A stretch of 57,271 nt of DNA, the filler included, from Hydrolagus affinis (taxonomy: Eukaryota): the NCBI GenBank assembly GCA_012026655.1. It is 4 parts of 4 records of this genome, joined end to end, with 100 filler letters (N's around TTAATTAATTAA, not from the genome) between each part and the next. Parts side by side here need not be neighbours in the genome. Positions count along the whole stretch, not along the records: positions 14,833 to 27,143 come from JAAILG010022123.1; 3 more parts are not named here. One strand, given 5' to 3'. The position numbers and the translations under genes were made by a program. The notes below the pieces were generated by a model. It saw nothing but the letters and a program-made list of their open reading frames with translations, was not told the DNA's origin and made no database searches. Positions 14,833 to 27,143 of this stretch are shown here, one piece after another; the first letter of the stretch is position 1; every line of letters starts with the position of its first letter.

Positions 14833-15230
14833 GACAGGGCGAACTGCTGGGCAAGTTTCCTTACCTCTTACCTCTAATGCCTCTGTTTACCCGGCAGTAA
14901 GTAGGAGCAGTTGATCACTTTTCAAGGGATAACAATCCTTAAAAATAACTATCATAATTTGGTCACTGGATCTACGACAGTTTGTGGGACACCCTGAGTG
15001 GCGGTCGTGTTTTGTCCACAAATGTACAGTCACTTCACAATATATTCCGTGAAGCGCTTTGATTGGCTAGAAGACATGACAAGCGCTGTATCAAACGGAA
15101 CGATTACTATGATTGTGTTCAGAACTAAAGACAATGAACCAATCATGGAACTAGGAGTTATGTGTTACCGACTGGGCGGGGGGCTCACTGTGAGATGGCT
15201 TAAGTCGCATTGGATTTGACAAATTCCCAG

Positions 15231-16384
15231 AAAACTCAAAGACCTAAATATCAGGAAAGGACAGCGCACACCCAGGTGAGGAACACTAAGTTTAGATATT
15301 AGTCATTTATATCCGAAAACATTTTTGGATTAGAAAATAAAATGGAAAAACAGTTGTTTACCCCAATATTACTGTTGTATTTCACCCTCCTCGAATTGTT
15401 TAATTCCAGTTGCCTGGCTGACTGGCAGATCATGTAATTGGTAGAGTTATACAAACCCTTCACTACTTATCAAAATAATCATTCTTAATATGAATCTTAG
15501 AGACGAGTGATATATGTCCTCAGAAGCACAGCTTTGGAATTTTAGCGATTGTCGACTAACTGAGTTCCCATTTCTCTGTCAGCCTTATGGAAATGTATAG
15601 AAGCTTCTATTAATCCCATCTCAACATGAAAAAGAATTCTTAACTCCTAGTTTTTAAAAAGTAAACATTGTATAGGGAATGCTGGGGATTCTGAAAGCAT
15701 TTATTTGGGAGATTACTGCAGTCTGACAGCATTAATAAATTAGTTACATTTACAAATACTTGCTTTTCTATCCAAAGGGAGCAAACAGGAACAAGCCAAC
15801 ATATGCATCTCTGGATTTCTCTGGCTCTAAGAAAACAGGAAAGGCTAAACCTACCTACAAGAATACGGAATATGCCGAGGTAAGCGTGATAAACCATCTG
15901 GAGCTAAGAGTCAAGATATGTTAAAATACTAGGTGTCAAAGCTGATTATTGGTTTGTGTTAGGCATGCTCCCTATGCATTGCAATCAACATCTCCATTAT
16001 TGCAGCATGTCCAGGATGGTAGAAGACAATTTAGATGGACCTTGGTCTTTTACAAATATCTTCTATCTATCTAATAATATTTATTAACTGAATTATATAT
16101 TTATCACACATTTCATCAATCAATATAGCTGACATGTAACAACAACAAAATTACAGTTGTATAGAATTATAACTAGAAGAAAGACAATCAATGCAATCTT
16201 ATAAGTAGTATAAATATTTAGCAGAGGCGTAAAGTAACTAAAACAAAGATCTCACATTATACTGAACCTTTGTCTTTACTAGGTCAAACAAGGGGCAAAC
16301 AAGCTGACTTATGCTGCTCTGGATTTGAGTAGCTCAACGAAAATGGGAAAACCTAAATCCAACAATATGCAGAGCTACAGATGA
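15231..16384 (+). CDS. 3' cytoplasmic exons of a SIRP-alpha-like inhibitory IgSF receptor (exons 15231-15275, 15778-15879, 16283-16384)
   Basis: AG/GT-bounded phase-0 exons read KTQRPKYQERTAHTQ | GANRNKPTYASLDFSGSKKTGKAKPTYKNTEYAE | VKQGANKLTYAALDLSSSTKMGKPKSNNMQSYR*. The first exon has a weak acceptor and is the least certain. Confidence 0.72.
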
Positions 16385-17805
16385 AAACTACAAACGTATA
16401 ACAAAGATTGTCAAGAGGGAATCAGGATGATGTAACATAGAAGAATCTGTGTCCTTTCTTGCTGCCCCATTGGTATCTCTCAAGCACAACTGTGGCTATC
16501 AATGATTATTTACTTAGTTAAAAAAGGTAGTTACTTATTGGATAAATTATTTTAATGCTTGGCAGTGGATTTTCCCTCCTCTACACATTCCACCTCACAT
16601 GATCATACCACCAGTGCCACTGCCTCCTCTCAGCAAATAGTAGCCTCCATCAGGTAGATCAACACCACCAAAATTCAGAGAGCTATGAGTCATTCCTTCC
16701 CACCCTTGACCTTCAAAAACCTACATTAAGACTTATTAGTTCAGCACTCTATAGGAACTTTTACCTCCTTCCTCATCTATCAATTCAAAACTCTACCCAA
16801 ATTACAGAAATTTTCAATAGTGGTGTAAACAGATTTTATAACATTGTAATAATTTATTAAACATAAATTGTATTGATATCTTCATTACTCATTCTGTCTC
16901 TTCAGTATTAATGAAGTAACATTTGATGTGGTTATTATATGTCTGATTAAGAATATATGGCACCCCTCATCTACCATTGTTACAAGATTAACACGAGGGT
17001 GTTCAAACTGATCAAATACTGTATCTACAAAAAGTTACCTAATAGGAACCATCTAAATTTTTGACTGCATTGATTTTTTATGTCATTATATCATTATATC
17101 AGAAGTTTTCAACTCCTAAAATGAACAGGGTATGCAGTTTTTCAATTATTATGATCTATTATTTAACAGTAAAATGGTTGTGTTTCACTGTATGTGTGAC
17201 TATAGATAGCTATTATGCATATATTAATGCAACAATCGATATGAGCTACAAAACGGGATCTCTTCCATCAAATTTTTAAGTGTTTCCTGGTCCACTATTA
17301 CTAAATTTTCATGTCATGAAAATTTAAAACAATATAATAAATATTTACCATGGCACAGCACATTTCATGTCGGGAAGACATCCTAAAGTCCTCAATGGAC
17401 TTGTCTGTTACCCAAGCTGTGGGTGGGAGTGAAGGGAAGGGCAAAGGTGAATGAAAGGACAGTCAACTAGACTTCAAAGGGACCATGAAACAGGTGAGGG
17501 TGGGAGTGAATCAGAGCAACTTCATGATTGAGTGCCACAGAGTGGACACAGATAGGCTGAAAACCAGATTGCTTCAGTGCTCTGGGTCTGCTACTCACCT
17601 TGTTTAATTATTGCTGATGGAAATTCAGAGATTGGGTGTAGATAATCAATATATTGTGTAAGAGAGTGAACTTTGAATCACTTTATTTATTGGGGGCAAG
17701 TTCGCATTTTGTTCCTGAACTCAAATACTTTACATTGTGGCAATCAGCTCTCAGTAAACCATAAAGAGGCAGGTACTGTACACAGGACACTCAGTAACGA
17801 TGATC

Positions 17806-18450
17806 ATAATAATAATAATCCTTGCAATTGACATGTTGCTTTGCATGTCTTCTAGACGTCTCAAAGCGCTTCACAGAATATACTGTAAAGTGAATTGATT
17901 GTACTTTTGTGGGTGAAATGCAGCAGCCAATTGTGCACAGCAGTATCCCACAAACAGTCGTGGATTGAAATGACCAATTTTATTATTGTTTTTTTTAGGG
18001 ATTATTGTTAGGAGTGTGGAGTAAGGAAACTTGCCCAAGGTTTCACCCTGACCTGCCTGGATTCAAACACAGGTCTCGCGCTTGTGAGGCAAGTGCTCTA
18101 ACCACTGAGCAGCAGGATTCCACTATATAATAAGAATAATAACAATAATAATAATAATCCTTGCATTTGATATAGCGCTTTTCAAATCTTATTGATGTCT
18201 CAAAGCACTTCACAGAATATACTGTAAAATGAATTGAATGTTTATATTTGTGGGTGAAACGCGGCAGCGGATTGTGCATAGCGGTGTCCCACAAACAGTC
18301 ATGGATTGAAATGACAAATTTTTATTACAGTGTTGTGTTTTTTTGGATGGATTAGTATTGGGTAAGGAAACTTACCCAAGGTTTCACCCTGATCTGCCTG
18401 GATTTGAACACAGGTCTCACTCTTGTAAAGCGAGTGCTCTAACCACTGAG
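17806..18450 (-). mobile_element. Two tandem tRNA-derived SINE copies (representative of many copies in the window)
   Basis: Minus-strand head with A-box-like GCTCAGTGGTTAGAGC and B-box-like GTTTGAATCC, a conserved core and an (ATT)n tail. Related copies lie at about 6160-6440, 14560-14732, 26630-26880, 46700-46960 and 52480-53110. Confidence 0.8.
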
Positions 18451-18885
18451 TTACAGGAGCTCCAAATATTTGTACAGTGTCGGCAGGATGTCCTGAAGTG
18501 CTGGACAGTTAAGGATTGGCACCCAAACTGGTGAATGGGATCAAGAGGGGTAAAGGGCAGGGCGGGGAGGGTAGGGGTAGGAGGGTGACCAAAGGCAGAG
18601 TCAAAGAGGAGGGTCTTGAGGCGGGTCTTGAAGGAGGTAATGGTGGAAGGACTGCAGGATGGAGTTCCAACAGGTGGGGACAGAGTGACTGAAGGCCCAC
18701 CCGACAATGGTGGGGCAGATGAGGTGGGGGGAACATGAAGCAGGCTGGAGCCCAATGAGTGCATGGAGTAGACCGGTTGGTAGGGGGGTTAATAGGTCAC
18801 AGAGGTAGTGGGGAGGGTCAGGGGTGGGCAGATGGGGGAAGAGAGAGAGTACATGGAGGGCTTTGATGGTGAGGATCTGGATCTT
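18450..18885 (-). mobile_element. L2-type LINE 3' fragment ending in a hairpin
   Basis: Reverse strand reads SFKTRLKTLLFDSAFG, as in the other L2 3' ends. Confidence 0.7.
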
Positions 18886-19538
18886 GGATGATCCAGATCC
18901 TCACCATGTAACTCCTCCGTTACAACAATATGCCCTCCAGGTAGGGTAGGTCCTTAGAGCGCTTGCAACAGGAGTCAGAGGAATTGCTCCTCCATTATAA
19001 ACAAGCTTCCCCACCCCCCCACATACACACCAGATAAAAAGGCAAGAAGGATTATTAGTACAGTAATAATAATCCTTGCATTTGATGTAACTCTTTTCAG
19101 GTCTTCTAGATGTCTCAAAGCACTTCACAGAATATATTGTAAAGTGAATTGACTGTATATATAATATGTATAATGCTTGCATCTGATAAAGCACCATATT
19201 ATGTTATTGCTCCATCTCAAAGTACTTCACAGGTTATACTGTAAAGTGTAGTGACTGTGTATTTGGGGGGCGAAATGCAGCAGCAATTTGTATACAACAG
19301 TGCCCTACGGTCGCAGTCACAGTTTGAGTGCACAATTTTATTTGAAGGATATTTGGCCAGGGCACCATGAGAGAGAAAATCCTTTCTCTTTTTTAATGTC
19401 CACCTGAACAGGCAGACAGGACCTTTGCTTATTTTCTTCAATTGACAGCACCTCCGACACTATAACCACACAACCCAGGACTGCATTGCAGCTTACACAG
19501 TATAATATACTGTTTCAAAGTATACAGTACTATGTATT

Positions 19539-19882
19539 ATTAATAATAATACTGCATTGATGTCACGATTAATATTGCAACCATTCACTTCTCAGGGTTA
19601 TTGAGGGGTGGGGCTAGAACACACAAACCTTCTGACTCAGAAGAACCAAGGCTTGGCGACTTCAGAGTGTGTGTTGGGGTAACTATTGGAGTCTAACCAA
19701 TAAATCCACTTGCCATTCATATCACTGATCCCTGGCAAGTTTTCCTGCTGCTTGTCCATCTAGGACCACACTACCTGTTAGGACTCGCTTGCAAAGTTAA
19801 CAGAAGCTGAGAAGGGTTATTCCCTGCCCTCAGTGAATGGTTGCAATATTAATCATGACATCAATGCAGTATTATTATTAAT
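19539..19882. repeat. 51-bp inverted repeat pair around a 242-bp spacer (MITE-like or flanks of an inversion)
   Basis: 19539-19589 and 19832-19882 are reverse complements at 50/51 positions. Confidence 0.8.
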
Positions 19883-21289
19883 TCTGCCTATCTCCTCTTT
19901 TCCCATCTCACCGCATGCACCAGGTATGAGAAGCTTTGGGTACTTTTTGTTGTTCAGAGAAGTTAAGCAATCATGTGTGACTATGTTAGACAACCCAGCC
20001 TGGGGCAAAGAATATATCACTTGTTATCACATGTTCTGCTACTGGGTGTGATGAACTCTGCTATTTAAACCTGCATTGGCCTCTATCTCCCTGTTGCTAT
20101 CGTCTGCCGAACACAGGTAAATCTGTCCTGTGTTGTGTTCAGGAAATACCTAGATAGAATGCAGTTCTCAGTGAGATCTCAAAGGACAAAGTTCAAGCAT
20201 AAAAAGCTGATGTTCCTGGAGACCAAAATCGAGAGGATCCGCTGAGCTCTTATCTCCTCTCAAGGCAAGGCACTTCTGCCTCCAGCATTTCACCATTCCT
20301 GCTTCAATTATTTTTACCATGTCTCATGCATCTCGTTCTTCCAGTAGTCCTTTACAAAACCCAGGAATTGCTCCACTAACCGAACTCCCAAACATAGCCA
20401 GACCCCTTTCTCACACCTCTGACAGCTAAAGCTGTAAACTTCTTAGCTTCTTCTCAGCTCAGGCGCTGACTGCATCAATGTATTTCACACCACAGAGTCA
20501 ACCGAGAAACCTACAATCTTGTTTGACCATCAAGTTTGCAGCCTCTGCCCTCTCCCGCACCAAAACCCAACCTATCACCCAAATCCACCGTGGCTTCCCA
20601 CCATTTAAGCAACTTCCTGCAATAGGAATGGCTGGAATGCACCTTTACCCCAGGAATCAGGAGTCTAACTCCCATCTCTGCTTTATTATCCTACCTCACC
20701 ATGATAGAGCGAGCTATTAGTCATTCTGATGCCGCTTCTTGGAACTCCATTCTCTCGGGTTCTTTTCTTTGCTCCCCACATTCAAAGTGCCCCTCAAAAC
20801 CTATTGCTGACCTATCTTTTGGTTCATTTCTTCCTGCCTATTACCAATTCCACCTTCAAATTCCCCACATTTCGATTTACGATACCCAGACAGATATCTA
20901 TAGTGCTTTGGGGTGTCCTCGTATCGTGGATAGCACCTTGGACATGTAAATTGTATCCACTGGTAATTGTATTGCTAATTGTATTGCTGAATGTTCTGCT
21001 GATGTTCAGGTCATTTTCATTCACAAACTATCATCCTGACCAAATACCAACCTGACAAAAGAAAGTTGCATAAACGTTTCTTCCGAAATTCATTTTTTCT
21101 GGTTCGAATAAATCCAAGTTTAAACCCCAGTACACGATGGTCATCAAATAGATTAGAGGGAGCTCAATAATGTTATCCTTTCACCTACATGAAAGTTGAG
21201 GATTCCATTATAATTATTCCTATCTGCACATTAATATCCACTGTAAATTCTTCTTCTGATTTGTAATCCCATCTCTTCTACACACACCC

Positions 21290-23890
21290 TCAAATCCTCT
21301 CAGTACCACTCTCTCCTCCCTCTCCTTCCACCTGGAAACCTACCCGCATTTTCCTTGAAGACGTTCCCTTTCCAACAAAGCCCTCAGTATCCATGACCTC
21401 ATCCTGGATGAGCACATTGACATTCTTGGGCTTATGGAAACTGGCTGTCCTCTAATGACCCCGTCCCTCTAGTCGAAGCCTCCCCTCCAGGCTACACCTT
21501 CCACCACCACACCCCCCGCCCTAGCCTATGTGGTAGTGGGGTGGCCATCATCTCCAAAGCTTCCCTTGGTCTTTCTCCCAATGCCTCTGGCTGTTTGCCC
21601 TCTTTCGAGCACCTCACCCTCTACCATCTATCTCTTTCTCTAAAAAATATTCTGCTCTACTGCCCTCCTAAACCACTTTGGTCCTTCCTCTGATATTTCC
21701 ACTCTCCTCTCCTCCCTGTCCCACAGCTCTGAATACCTGCTCATCATGGGCAACTTCAAACTTCACCTAATCTCCCCCTGCATCACATCCTCCGATTTCA
21801 CTGCCCTCCTCTCCTCCCTAAACCTCACCCTCCATATCAACTCTCCAACCCATAACCATGGCAATGCACTCAACCTTGTCCTCACCCACGGCCTTGACAT
21901 CTCCAACCTCAACATTATGGACAAGGGTATCTTGGAACACTTGCTCACCTCCTTCTCCTCTCACATCTCTCTCTCCTCAACAAGCTCTCAACTGCACTCT
22001 TACACCCATGTAAACAGTCTTCCCCCTGTGACCCTCACAGAGGCCCTCACATCCTCTGACATCTTATCCCTCTGGCCTTCCACCTGCAGAGATGCTAAAG
22101 CAGCCATCCAGCTGTTGCACAATCGCCTCTCCCCCACCTTCAACTCTCTCATTCCCCTGAAGTCCACGATCATCTCCAAACCCACCCGATCGCCCTGGTA
22201 CAACAGTCATCTCCGCTCACAAAAGACATAGTCTCGACAGCTTGAGTGCAGGTGGCAGAAGCCGGGTTGACGGATCACTGCCTGCTGTGGCTCAAGCACC
22301 TCCACAGTTATCGCTATTCATGGTCACGAGCAAAAACAGCTTATTACTCAAACATCATTCTGGAGGGTAAAAACAGCCCCAAAGTCCTCTTTTCCACAAC
22401 CCACCACCTCCTACATGCACCTTCTCAGGCATCCTAAATCTTCACTTCAAATGTGAAGTGCGAGAAGGTCATGGTCTTCTCCTCCAAAATCCACAATATC
22501 CACCTGGCAGCCTCATCCTCCTGCCTCTCATCGCCCACCATCACCACCCACATTCCGTCCCCCTCACCTTCCCCATCATCAGCTTCTATCACTACTCCGT
22601 TCCTACAATCCAGTTTCCGCCCTACCCACAGTACAGAGACTGCGCTTGTGAAAGTCACAAGCAAGTCTCTATCTGTGACCAGGGCTCCCTCTGCCTCCTT
22701 GTCGTCCTGGACTCTTCAGCAACATTCGACACAGTCGACCACGCCATCCTCCTCCACCGCCTCCTCCGTTGTTCACCTCAGTGTGACTGCACTCGCCTGG
22801 TTTGAGTCCTACCTTACAAATCACCGGGAGTATATCGCCACAAATGGCTTTTCCTCCCGCTCTCACTCGGTTAAATGTGGGGTAACCCAAGCATCCATTC
22901 TTGGACCCCTCCTCTTCATAAACTATCCTCTTCCTTCTTGGTGACATCATCTGCAGACATGGGGTACACTACCACATGTATGCGGATGACACCCAATTCT
23001 ATTTTTCCGCCTCACTTTGCGACCCCTTGATGTACTGTCAGCCTGCCTGTCAGACATGAGGAGCTGGATGAGCGTGAATTTCCTGCACCTGTATGTTGAC
23101 AAGACGGAAGACATACTATTTGGCTCTCTTCATCATCTTCATTCACATGGCTCTCACCTCCTCCACCTTCATGACCTGCCCCTAAAACTCTCCAAACTGG
23201 TACGCAACCTTGGCGTCAGGTTCAACCCACAACTGTCCTTCCTCCCCCACATCCGGTCTCTCACCAGCACTGCTTTTTTCCACCTCCGACATTTTGCCCA
23301 TCTTTGGTAATAACTTGCCCCAAAAGCCGCTGAAACTCTGGTCCATGCCTTTGTCACCTCTCAGCTGGACTTTGCAAATCCACTCCTCCACCACAATCCA
23401 TAAAATCCAGCTCAGTCAGAACTCTGACGCCCGCGTTCTCACCCGGACCAAACTTCGCTCCCCCATTACCACAGTCCTTGCCAGATTCACTGGCTCCCTG
23501 TCCCGGAGAGGATCAATTTCAAGATCCTCACTCTTGGCTTCAAATCTCTCCAATCCTCTGCATCCCTTACCTCTCTGACCTCTTCTCTCCCCAAAACAGC
23601 ACCCGTTGCCTTCGCTCCTCCGGTTCAGGTCTCCTCCTCGTCTCCCAAATCCTCCGTTCCACAATCGGCGGCCGTGCCTTCAGCCACTGCGCCCCGAAGC
23701 TCTGGCACTCCCTTCCTCACTCCCTTTGCCTTGCTCCCTCTCTTCCTAGTTTTAGATCTCGGTTAAAGACCTTTCTGTTCGACTGCGCATTGGGTCACCT
23801 TATTCCCCTTCCCCCTGGCACGGACCCGGGGTCCGTTTTTGTGAAGCGCTCTGGAGGGCGCTCCATAAACCAAAGTTGTTGTTGTTGTTG
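21290..23890 (+). mobile_element. Degenerate L2-type LINE ORF2 (AP endonuclease + RT) with 3' tail
   Basis: Endonuclease-like LSIHDLILDEHIDILGLMET at about 21380, RT motifs LLVVLDSSATFDTVDH and HMYADDTQ, and a (GTT)n tail at about 23875-23893. Many stops and frameshifts. Confidence 0.85.
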
Positions 23891-24868
23891 TTGTAATCTC
23901 CTACAGTCAGGAAGTTTCCACCAAGGGAACCTAATTACTAATCAACAATTCTTCCTTACATTGTGTACAAAAAATACAATGACTTTCCGAATATCCCAGA
24001 AATCATTACATAGTTCTACTTGGAGACATACCTTCTTACTCCAATTCTAATATCCTTGACGATCAAAATGAGAATTATTATTACATGTTAGGTTTCCACA
24101 ATGAGTCTTGTTTTAATGCAGCAAATCGTTTCATTGCGAACAAGAACAATCTATTAGGATAATGTTTAATTTCAACTGAACGACATTTGTTCAGCTGTGA
24201 GAAATTTAAACGAACAGAAGTCAGGTTTAAAACTATCACGATTTAGCAACACACAACTTACAGGATTATGAAAAAAATGAACCAAATATCGGATTTGATC
24301 CATAAATTCCTAATTTTTTATAGAATAGTTTGGTTCTTTGGGCGTCCAATGGTTGAAAATACAGTAATTTGTTATAATAATAAGTGATTCTGAATATATT
24401 CAAATATATTTTTAAAATAATTGATTATTTCGATCTACCAGACTAACAATACCCCAATAGCACAACACAATATCTTAATGCATACGTTCTGAAAAGGTCC
24501 CTTCAAATGGCTCTGTTGGAGGGAACTGTTGGGAATGTTCTCCCACGAAATTAAACTTGTTTGTGTACGGTCACGAAAATAACAGTCAGACATTGCACTG
24601 AGGAGCTATACTAGTTAATAGTTCAAAGAGTAATAAAAGATGTATTGGTGTTTCAGATACAGTTCACCTTGTATCGTTATTGGCGTTAAATCATTTTTAG
24701 TCGCTCTTAATGTAGACATCAGTTTTTTATGAAAATGGAAACCAATTGTATTGCTCAATCTGCAGGGGCAGGACGTTAGGCGTCACTGACTTACATTCAT
24801 TTCAGCGTCTGCCACCCCTTGATGCAGACCAGCGGCGGGTCAGATAGTCTCAGACAGTGATCTGAGCC

Positions 24869-27143
24869 ATGGCAAGCGCTGCGTTTCACTATTTCTCTCT
24901 CGTGGGGTTACTTTCCACAGGTAGGTGCTCGGTTTGGTTAAAAAAAACTATGTATTTATGTCCTAAAGTACGCGCTCCGGGCGCTACCCTGAGAGAGAGA
25001 TTCGCTAGGTAAATGCAAAATGTTGTGAACGTAGTTTCGTTGCTTCACTTTCAACTCCCCGACCTCACGCTGTGTATCTTCTCTGTACTCGCTGTGATCG
25101 GTTCTGTATTTTACCCAATCAGTGTCTGAATTTATTCCTGATAGTTGCTGACGGTACTTTGATGAAAGTGACTCAACTCCCCAAACACACCGTCACTAAA
25201 GGAGGAAGCGTCACATTCCAGTGTGGCATTCCCTACTTTGAAGGCTCCCCACGTATTAAAGTGTACTGGTGGAAGCTTGGGGAGAGGGAGTACCTGCAAA
25301 CAAGGCCAGATCCCAGGAAAATATTTGGTTTCGAACAAGGAGGAAGCGGCTTCATTCAGCTCCTGGATGTGAATTTCCAGGACTCTGGAGTTTATCACTG
25401 CGCTCTGGTGTTACAGGGGAAAATAGCAGCAAATGGAACTGGATCCACTTTAACTGTTTGCCGTAAGTGTTAAACCAGCGTAGATCTGGATCATTGCTAT
25501 CTACACATGTTACCCAAACATAACTAACTAATACACTATACTCTGAAAAGAATCAAAAGTAGAATAAGACCTACATGTGTGTTTATCTTCTACTTTGGGG
25601 AAATGTTCCAGTTCCTGAAGAGGAATGGCATTCCCTGGTTACCTAATCCTGGAGAGTATAGGTTGGCAAGTGCCAAGGGTTGGGACCTGAGTCAGCTAAA
25701 GCCGCAAACTTGTCCCAGCAATTAAAAACTTGAAAACACTGTGTCCGGCAAGCTTCCTGCCGTGTGTGTGGGGCAGTCAGCCTGCCGCTTACTGACTAAA
25801 GTAAATAGGGGACATGAGTGGGAAGACTCTCTGCCCCCAGCACTGTCTGCCTCTGATCCTCGCTGATGAGCCGGGCTGGCTGGTCTGTCACCAGCAAAGC
25901 TTGAGAGGCTCTGAGGACCTGCCAACGTTAGGAATGGAAACACTGACACAGAATTGACTGAGTTGGAACATTGCGCCGCTGAGCGCGTCCTCGTAGAGCA
26001 GTTCAGTTCCAAGGAGACTCCATTCACCTCGATAGTGTAATCATTTAGTGGCTACAAACACGATAAACATGCCAGTAACCAAACTAACCCAAACCAAATA
26101 ATAATAATGAATTTTAAAATAATAATAATTCGTATCATTAGGAATATATACTGAGATTTATTCGCATCGAACTGTCCGAATAACACAATCGAGAATTGCA
26201 TAACATCTCTAGAATATCCTTGTAAAGGTGGGAAACACGAAATTTATCATGGATACTTTTAAGAAGATTGTGATAGTTTTTTTTTGCATTGATGTCAGCC
26301 ACTCGGCTGACTGAAAACATTGTGGAAATGAATCCTTACCTCGTTGACGGTTTAAATAGAAAATAGCAGCCGCGTTTTATTCTCGCTTGGGCTATCTTTT
26401 TTGGGTGAAGTCATTGACTTAAAGGTGAACTACATTCAATACTAACAATGTTGTTTCATTACTTTTGGAAACTGGGATTCCTGGAGATTAAATAAAATAT
26501 GCCGTTAAGTAAGAAATACATAAATCAGATCAATTTGCGGCAGAAAATGTAATCGGATATAAATCAGAATAAACGTTTCTCCAACTGAAGTTGTGTAATT
26601 CGGTTCCAATATGGAGGTTTGTATCGCAGTGGCTCGAGCCTCACAAGCGAGAGACCTGTGCTCGATTCCAGGCAGGCCTGAACCTTGGGCAAGGGTCCTC
26701 ACTCCTCACACCGGATTATAATCCCAGAAGAGGATCCACAACAATACATTGATCATAAATTGTCTGTGCGCAATTGGCCGCCGCGTTTCTACCACAAACG
26801 TACAAGTACCTTCTGTGAGGCGCTTGGAGACGTACAGAAGATGTGAAAAACACTATGTGAAATGCAAGGATTATTATTGTTATTACCTAATTTACAGTTC
26901 CGCCAACGTCGCTGAAGATAATCCCAAGATTTAGTCAACATAATACACTCGTGTCTCTGACTCTTGTGTGTCAAACGGCTGTGTATTACCCGAAGAATCT
27001 CACCCTGACTTGGTATAACAATGGCACCGAAATTACAACCGGAATAAATACCACTGAGCAGCAGCATCCAGATGGATTGTATAGGACTTCCAGCTCACTG
27101 GAGGTGGCATCACCTGTCTTGAATGGGACTGTTTATACCTGTA
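24869..27143 (+). CDS. Non-rearranging leader-VJ-C1 IgSF receptor gene (SIRP/VJC1-like), 3' part lost in gap (exons 24869-24920, 25145-25462, 26898-27143+)
   Basis: Leader MASAAFHYFSLVGLLST (phase 1). V exon has FQC, YWW, DSGVYHC and a germline-fused G strand NGTGSTLTV, followed by a GTAAGT donor and no RSS. The C1-set exon has LVC, YYPKNLTLTW, HPDGLYRTSSSL and VYTC. All exons are open and in phase. Confidence 0.88.

Follow-up and report, generated by a model that had tools for sequence, protein, structure and literature searches.

Genes that join a variable (V) domain with a germline J-like strand to a C1-set domain are rare outside the immunoglobulin (Ig), T-cell receptor (TCR) and SIRP genes and a few others, and V(J)-C1 genes are central to the debate over which gene the RAG transposon entered. 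Birds, reptiles, amphibians and bony fish have PRARP genes, reportedly treated by Fu et al. in 2019 (a study cited in PMC10751288); they are said to be non-rearranging genes of V(J)-C1-transmembrane (TM) type that are discussed as antigen-receptor relics. SIRPs are composed of a V domain together with a pair of C1-set domains, and carry either a tail with immunoreceptor tyrosine-based inhibitory motifs (ITIMs) or a DAP12-binding basic TM residue (PMC12975943). In the non-rearranging elasmobranch genes UrIg and UrIg2 the leader is split, the VJ exon is unsplit and C1 exons are present; UrIg is a secreted protein with three C1 domains, and UrIg2 has nine or more C1 domains and a TM segment (PMC12227049). 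In this work we analyzed a 57,271-nt stretch of DNA from Hydrolagus affinis (GCA_012026655.1), referred to as the window, and within it a gene located in the piece derived from JAAILG010022123.1 (positions 14,833-27,143). Our results indicate that this piece very probably holds the 5′ half of a non-rearranging germline gene for a type I membrane receptor, which is the orthologue of Callorhinchus milii LOC103185890 and belongs to a chondrichthyan V-C1 family.

Exon anatomy and orthology of the window gene

The leader, V and C1 exons called in the first-pass annotation (Table 1) are all present; they are mutually in phase, their splice sites are canonical and all 205 of the 205 visible codons are open. 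The leader ATG lies in a good Kozak context (gccATGg), and the exon comprises 17 codons and one base followed by the GTAGGT donor. The V exon is in phase 1 at both its 5′ and 3′ ends and reads ...DSGVYHCALVLQGKIAANGTGSTLTV, then one Cys codon and one base, then GTAAGT. The end of this exon had been placed correctly, with the Cys codon before the donor left out of the earlier reading. A scan for recombination signal sequences (RSS) detected neither heptamer nor nonamer in or beside the V exon, in agreement with what had been claimed from first inspection; the sole CACTGTG, at position 25737, is found deep inside intron 2 and has no nonamer partner. In the C1 exon we recognized the motifs LVC, YYPKNLTLTW, HPDGLYRTSS, DGLYRTSSSL and VYTC. 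The exon is cut by the piece edge at 27143, directly after the second Cys (…VYTC), and the expected …VSH signature and every downstream exon of the gene fall beyond that edge. Several N-x-S/T sites had been reported for the C1 exon; in the gene we counted five, an NGT in the J-like strand and four in C1 (NLT, NGT, NTT, NGT). A tblastn search of the piece with V and C1 peptides revealed no further Ig exons in it.

The best match to the V exon was the C. milii P0001/P0152 cluster, which corresponds to LOC103185890 (XP_007902823.1 / UniProt A0A4W3HMH6; locus label L002, scaffold MU249845.1), with 75% identity in V and 78% in C1. The leaders of the window gene and of P0152 are nearly alike, and the boundary at the leader donor, …CTTTCCACAG followed by GTAGGT, is also found at L002:8248-8299. 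The C. milii locus is collinear with positions 20144-27143 of the window, all four splice junctions and their phases are identical between the two genes, and the exons are 85% identical vs. 73% for intron 1. In a maximum-likelihood tree of 39 ectodomains the window gene was placed as sister to P0152 with support of 100/99. We determined that the window gene and C. milii LOC103185890 are 1:1 orthologues. The window gene shares with its C. milii counterpart the leader/V/C1 boundaries and phases, the collinear locus and the sister position in the tree, and differs from it in lineage-specific repeat insertions and in belonging to another species at a dS of 0.28; its source is accordingly a holocephalan distinct from C. 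milii. The dN/dS ratio between the two genes is 0.49 overall (0.46 for V, 0.47 for C1), and by these rates the window gene has been under moderate purifying selection.

Table 1. Features of the window gene and its surroundings (positions along the window)
Feature	Position	Strand	Remarks
Leader exon	24869-24920	+	ATG, hydrophobic signal-peptide core FSLVGLL, split leader, phase-1 GT donor
Intron 1	24921-25144	+	224 nt
Single V-like exon with its own J-like G strand	25145-25462	+	AG acceptor, GTAAGT donor
Intron 2	25463-26897	+	1435 nt; contains the SINE-like insertion
C1-set exon	26898-27143	+	AG acceptor; open up to the piece edge
SINE-like insertion	26608-26881		274 bp, in intron 2; absent from the C. 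milii orthologue
Strongly C-rich repeat insertion	21269-23899		2.6 kb, GC skew about -0.4; ends ~1 kb upstream of the ATG
Tandem upstream paralogue, three cytoplasmic exons	15171-15278, 15777-15879, 16283-16384	+	

The V-like and C1-set domains

The Ig domain in the V exon is complete, extending from strand A through ...DSGVYHC...NGTGSTLTV. In Pfam it reaches 31 bits for V-set vs. a cut-off of 26, and it also scores in Ig_3 and I-set. This is a short V domain: its cysteines are separated by 59 residues, about 6-9 fewer than in typical V-set domains. When the exon was compared with the PDB, the best single-domain sequence matches were I-set domains (Robo, titin), and only Ig-lambda light-chain variable (VL) and TCR V-beta domains aligned with it through the G strand. 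Because the domain is short and its best matches are I-set, we regard it as probably intermediate between V-set and I-set and not as a textbook V-set domain. The J-like G strand described for this exon was confirmed with one refinement: the motif N-G-T-G-S-T-L-T-V has the GxG bulge but lacks the Phe/Trp of FGxG. The Asn that opens the strand forms an N-G-T/S sequon in 20 of 30 family representatives. Across the family V alignment Q10, P12, C26, W41, Y83, C85 and GxG are conserved, and column entropy peaks in the BC loop, the C′-D region and the FG loop, a pattern as would be expected for ligand-contact loops. At the junction of V and C1 the window gene has an unpaired Cys, which also occurs in seven of the 30 sequences in the alignment (six C. 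milii, one Heterodontus) and could form an interchain disulfide.

We also noted DNA-like contigs from run X1 that cover window positions 25189-25248. They show clustered changes in the codons of the BC (CDR1-like) loop, read as E32D, G33S and V16A, and their frame stays open. The contigs come from a related individual or species, and ~4% of their positions differ from the window overall.

For the second domain, the C1-set class proposed in the first-pass annotation was upheld, and the competing C2/I-set classification was not: in Pfam the C1 exon scores 46.2 bits for C1-set (cut-off 21, E 5.8e-12) and 18.9 bits for C2-set_2, under the cut-off of 21. The C1-set profile match of the orthologue spans positions 3-86 of 86. 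The C1 signature YxCxVxH is visible up to YTC in the window and is complete in the orthologue (YTCKVSH), and the exon resembles in sequence the constant domains of Ig light chains (LVC..FYP...W, G..TT, SS.L, YTC.V.H).

An AlphaFold2 model of the orthologue's ectodomain was built from a 29-sequence family alignment, with a predicted local distance difference test score (pLDDT) of 91 and a predicted template modeling score (pTM) of 0.83. It consists of two beta-sandwich (Ig) domains. In domain 1 the G strand is split at GxG and the C′/C″ hairpin is almost absent; in domain 2 a strand is predicted between strands C and E, at positions 156-162, and we take it for the D strand that a C1 domain should have. 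Foldseek searches with this model against the PDB, Swiss-Prot and clusters of the AlphaFold database returned V-C type proteins all alike (E 1e-11 to 1e-14, 13-24% identity), and the AlphaFold clusters included a single one from the family itself, at 39% identity. When the V and C1 alignments of the family were used as profiles to search the PDB, the ranking was dominated by titin, Robo and Ig heavy chains; since such multi-domain chains dominate, the ranking cannot order families. Taken together, the sequence and structure searches give no placement of the family relative to SIRP, UrIg, Ig light chains or TCR.

A chondrichthyan V-C1 family and its likeness to SIRP

A phmmer search of 1.84 billion representative proteins with the V exon as query gave 219 matches, ~80 of them at E<1e-10, and the source organism was looked up for 30 of the 150 listed matches. 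Proteins with a single match near the N-terminus and a length of 220-490 residues make up one family. Among the 30 matches looked up, all the single-V ones are chondrichthyan. The genera recorded are Callorhinchus, Heterodontus, Scyliorhinus, Mustelus, Heptranchias, Cetorhinus, Amblyraja, Pristis, Hemitrygon, Hypanus and Mobula, to which later family searches added Hemiscyllium, Narcine and Chiloscyllium; members were found in every cartilaginous-fish genome sampled. The weaker, non-chondrichthyan matches that were looked up have a V-V-V organization (P0150, P0096, P0136, P0140) or, in one case, are a multi-Ig I-set/V-set protein (P0110, Vipera), and none of them shows the V-C1 architecture. 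Likewise, no bird or reptile V-C1 protein was present among the 30 looked-up of the 150 listed matches. Word-indexed protein searches with P0152, the family alignment and the C1 alignment retrieved family members only and no outgroups.

The window gene is 35-57% identical to 28 other members of the family. In the family ground plan a signal peptide is followed by a single V-like and a single C1-set domain, a stalk, a TM segment and a tail. The same order of leader, V, C1, TM and tail exons is seen in a paralogue at a second C. milii locus (L001). The C. milii cluster covers at least 0.59 Mb (MU249845.1, at least 15.247-15.834 Mb) with genes in both orientations. The tree of 39 ectodomains shows C. 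milii-specific expansions together with at least one lineage common to C. milii and a shark (Heptranchias); on the evidence of this tree the C. milii/Heptranchias lineage predates the holocephalan-elasmobranch split. Automatic names given to the members conflict with each other: PTPNS1-like/SIRP-alpha-like, SIRP beta-1-like, tapasin-related protein-like, NCR3LG1-like (B7H6-like) and Ig lambda-1 light chain-like. No published description of the family was found in the searchable literature and no curated name exists for it. The earlier suggestion of a chondrichthyan receptor of SIRP/VJC1 type, perhaps uncurated, is thereby borne out by the nearest protein, which is from C. milii, by the TM segment and ITIM-type tail of its full model and by the automatic naming; strict membership in SIRP is not, given one C1 domain rather than two. 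Relatives are already predicted in public databases, and the window gene is one unannotated, half-visible orthologue of a predicted C. milii gene, so that the value of the finding lies in the family rather than in this copy: cartilaginous fish have a large V-C1 family with both ITIM-bearing and Arg-TM forms, filed in databases under five automatic names that contradict one another.

P0152, the older and full C. milii model, has 392 aa and continues from C1 (…YTCKVSH…) into a stalk, an uncharged TM segment and a 137-residue tail with three tyrosine-motif modules of the type xxYAxLDL … TEYAxV. In a set of 60 family proteins, long tails with several motifs of the ITIM or immunoreceptor tyrosine-based switch motif (ITSM) type accompany uncharged TM segments, and a separate subset combines a short tail with an Arg located in the outer third of its TM segment. 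The combination of long ITIM/uncharged-TM forms with short Arg-TM forms is a paired-receptor signature, and the family therefore looks like a paired inhibitory/activating receptor system. In the mechanism that we propose, the glycosylated V-like domain would bind a ligand by its variable BC, C′-D and FG loops, with the C1 domain serving as a spacer. Long-tailed members, among them the orthologue of the window gene, would become phosphorylated at their ITIM/ITSM-type tyrosines, recruit SHP-type phosphatases and inhibit the cell, and the short-tailed Arg-TM paralogues may pair with adaptors bearing immunoreceptor tyrosine-based activation motifs and activate it. The family would then operate like the SIRP-alpha/SIRP-beta, KIR or LILR paired receptors. 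For the window copy itself we infer a TM segment and ITIM tail, expression, phosphatase recruitment and ligand binding of the same kind.

At stake is whether paired receptors of SIRP type had already arisen at the base of jawed vertebrates or these genes instead form a separate relic lineage. The most serious rival to our reading is that the family consists of true SIRP (co-)orthologues, i.e., a chondrichthyan SIRP-alpha/beta cluster that lacks one C1 domain and presumably binds the CD47 orthologue. Most members are automatically named by their best match as 'tyrosine-protein phosphatase non-receptor type substrate 1-like' or 'SIRP beta-1-like', SIRP-alpha and SIRP-gamma are among the PDB matches of the C1 exon, and SIRPB1 and SIRPA among the Swiss-Prot matches found by Foldseek. 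The common logic, in which a V domain with a GxG strand is combined with a C1-set domain and ITIM forms are paired with basic-TM forms, points in the same direction (PMC12975943). Structural-alignment identity to SIRPs is, however, 13-20%, which is no better than that to PD-L1, TAPBPL, CADM4 or Ig lambda, the V domain is shorter between its cysteines than a typical V-set domain, and ITIM/ITSM tails are generic among inhibitory receptors. Moreover, the orthologue and the family have one C1 domain, the only two-C1 exceptions being an exon duplicate (P0027) and a mis-fused model (P0017). We consider true SIRP orthology unlikely. Compared with SIRP (PDB 2wng, 4i2x), the family has in common an N-terminal Ig domain with a GxG G strand in one exon, a C1-set domain, the layout of a type I membrane receptor and the occurrence of paired forms; it differs in having one C1 domain vs. 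two in SIRP and, in its short-tailed members, a TM Arg rather than Lys. In view of the single C1 domain, the shorter V domain and the 13-20% identity, we describe the family as apparently SIRP-like in operation and do not file it as SIRP.

With regard to the two exceptional models, P0027 (Amblyraja radiata) carries near-identical tandem C1 domains, which are either a recent exon duplication or an assembly artefact, and P0017 is a C1-V-C1 fusion of neighboring genes. Automatic gene models in these clusters are unreliable.

Functional state of the window gene and its possible relation to antigen-receptor genes

Several observations weigh against the window gene being a working inhibitory receptor. 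The TM and tail exons of this copy fall outside the piece, so the inhibitory signaling proposed for it rests on the orthologue, and in the current C. milii assembly the C1 exon of that orthologue contains a 1-nt frameshift. The SINE (short interspersed element)-like insertion in intron 2 reaches to within 16 nt of the C1 acceptor, where it could interfere with splicing. Three single-cell RNA runs put reads on this SINE alone and gave no exon or spliced reads; as the libraries are 3′-biased and derive from another organism, the result is uninformative rather than negative. Finally, the neighboring paralogue has lost its ITIMs, and tails in the cluster therefore do decay.

The frameshift in C. 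milii is located in a G run which, in assembly GCA_018977255.1 (L002:9960-9995), is one base short of the older model. Since the run shifts the frame, the current NCBI model XP_007902823.2 ends at 201 aa. The missing base reflects either a homopolymer error of the assembly or a genuine lesion, which would mark the orthologue as dispensable.

The upstream paralogue is represented in the window by its tail. The first 1.6 kb of the piece aligns to the 3′ exons of the C. milii gene and encodes three cytoplasmic exons (Table 1). In the first of them a TAA (15201-15203) takes the place of the first ITIM Tyr, with MAYVTLDL in C. milii and MA*VALDL here, and the Tyr after this stop-hit ITIM is replaced by His. 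The second exon is intact (PTYASLDF…TEYAE, followed by gtaagc). The last one has, in comparison with L002, a deletion of ~10 bases as estimated by eye, and the final TEYAEV is lost. The paralogue is thus either a truncated, ITIM-less receptor or a pseudogene.

These data raise the alternative that the window gene too is non-functional, being a recent pseudogene or an unexpressed duplicate in a birth-and-death cluster. Exons without RNA reads, the SINE-like insertion close to the C1 acceptor, the 2.6-kb repeat upstream of the ATG, the nonsense codon and frameshifting deletion in the tail of the adjacent paralogue, and a dN/dS that speaks for only moderate constraint would all fit such a gene. 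On the other hand, every visible codon is open, the splice sites are canonical and the start context is good; the exons are clearly better conserved than the introns, dN/dS stays below 1 over a dS of 0.28, and the silence of the RNA runs carries little weight for the reasons given above. We find a non-functional window gene improbable.

A relation to antigen-receptor genes was considered next to the SIRP-like reading. The family could be a pre-RAG antigen-receptor relic and not a relative of SIRP; it would then stand next to UrIg and UrIg2 as a third VJ-C1 lineage that does not rearrange, or be the chondrichthyan counterpart of PRARP. The split leader, the V exon with a built-in GxG J strand and the C1 exon that comes next are arranged as in UrIg/UrIg2 (PMC12227049), the C1 sequence is like that of Ig light-chain constant domains, and the C. 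milii/Heptranchias lineage is older than the holocephalan-elasmobranch split. The top PDB match of the C1 exon is UrIg2 (9dmx), with a score summed over three domains; per domain, the exon reaches 14-24 bits against UrIg2, no higher than the 20-25 bits against ordinary Ig heavy- and light-chain constant domains. UrIg2 is, moreover, absent from the best 60 PDB matches of the V exon, and likewise from those of the V profile. The J motif lacks the Phe/Trp and in most members holds a sequon, which argues against an Ig-like V-V dimer interface, and in its fast evolution and its expansion the family behaves like a cluster of paired receptors. Thus, the family and UrIg/UrIg2 are alike in the split leader, the unsplit VJ-type exon, the C1-type exons and their occurrence in cartilaginous fish, yet the family is multicopy, with one C1 domain and an ITIM tail, whereas UrIg is a single conserved gene that is secreted with three C1 domains and UrIg2 has nine or more. 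We judge descent as a relic improbable. We would give no more credit to its broader form, in which an independent ancient membrane-bound V(J)-C1 lineage, older than the holocephalan-elasmobranch split, was co-opted into a polygenic inhibitory/activating system of KIR/LILR type. If such a lineage did exist, its position could inform how the RAG-invaded gene looked as a cell-surface signaling receptor. As for PRARP, the architecture looks the same going by its reported description alone.

By far the weakest alternative, that the gene is a joined copy of a rearranging gene from a germline-joined Ig light-chain or TCR-like cluster, draws on the germline-joined Ig clusters that cartilaginous fish possess, on members automatically named 'immunoglobulin lambda-1 light chain-like' and on the Fab light and heavy chains that head the Foldseek PDB list, and is rejected as next to impossible because the V exon is only weakly similar to VL and TCR V domains (E about 1e-3, 22 bits) and the orthologue, like most relatives, runs on into a TM segment and a long ITIM tail; further, the J motif is without FGxG, TM-scores to the Fab chains are only ~0.44 at 18-24% identity, and there are no split, RSS-bearing relatives among the database matches. 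A match to a joined light-chain cluster, which the first-pass annotation had named as the result that would speak against a separate receptor family, is accordingly not what the weak VL similarity and the orthologue's TM segment and signaling tail indicate.

The two insertions at the locus were also compared with other sequences. The C-rich segment upstream of the gene has no counterpart at the collinear C. milii position, and parts of the segment are found again at other places in L001 and L002; by this distribution it is an interspersed-repeat insertion. A label of long interspersed element (LINE) remnant was considered for it and is unsupported, as a Pfam search of the open reading frames of the segment gave no reverse-transcriptase match. 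Rfam returned no matches on the piece, including no tRNA or SINE for the insertion in intron 2. Relatives of this SINE-like insertion were found in the window at 17806-18450 (two tandem copies with a 341-bp period), ~19060-19160 and ~14940-15110, and copies are frequent in the C. milii loci.

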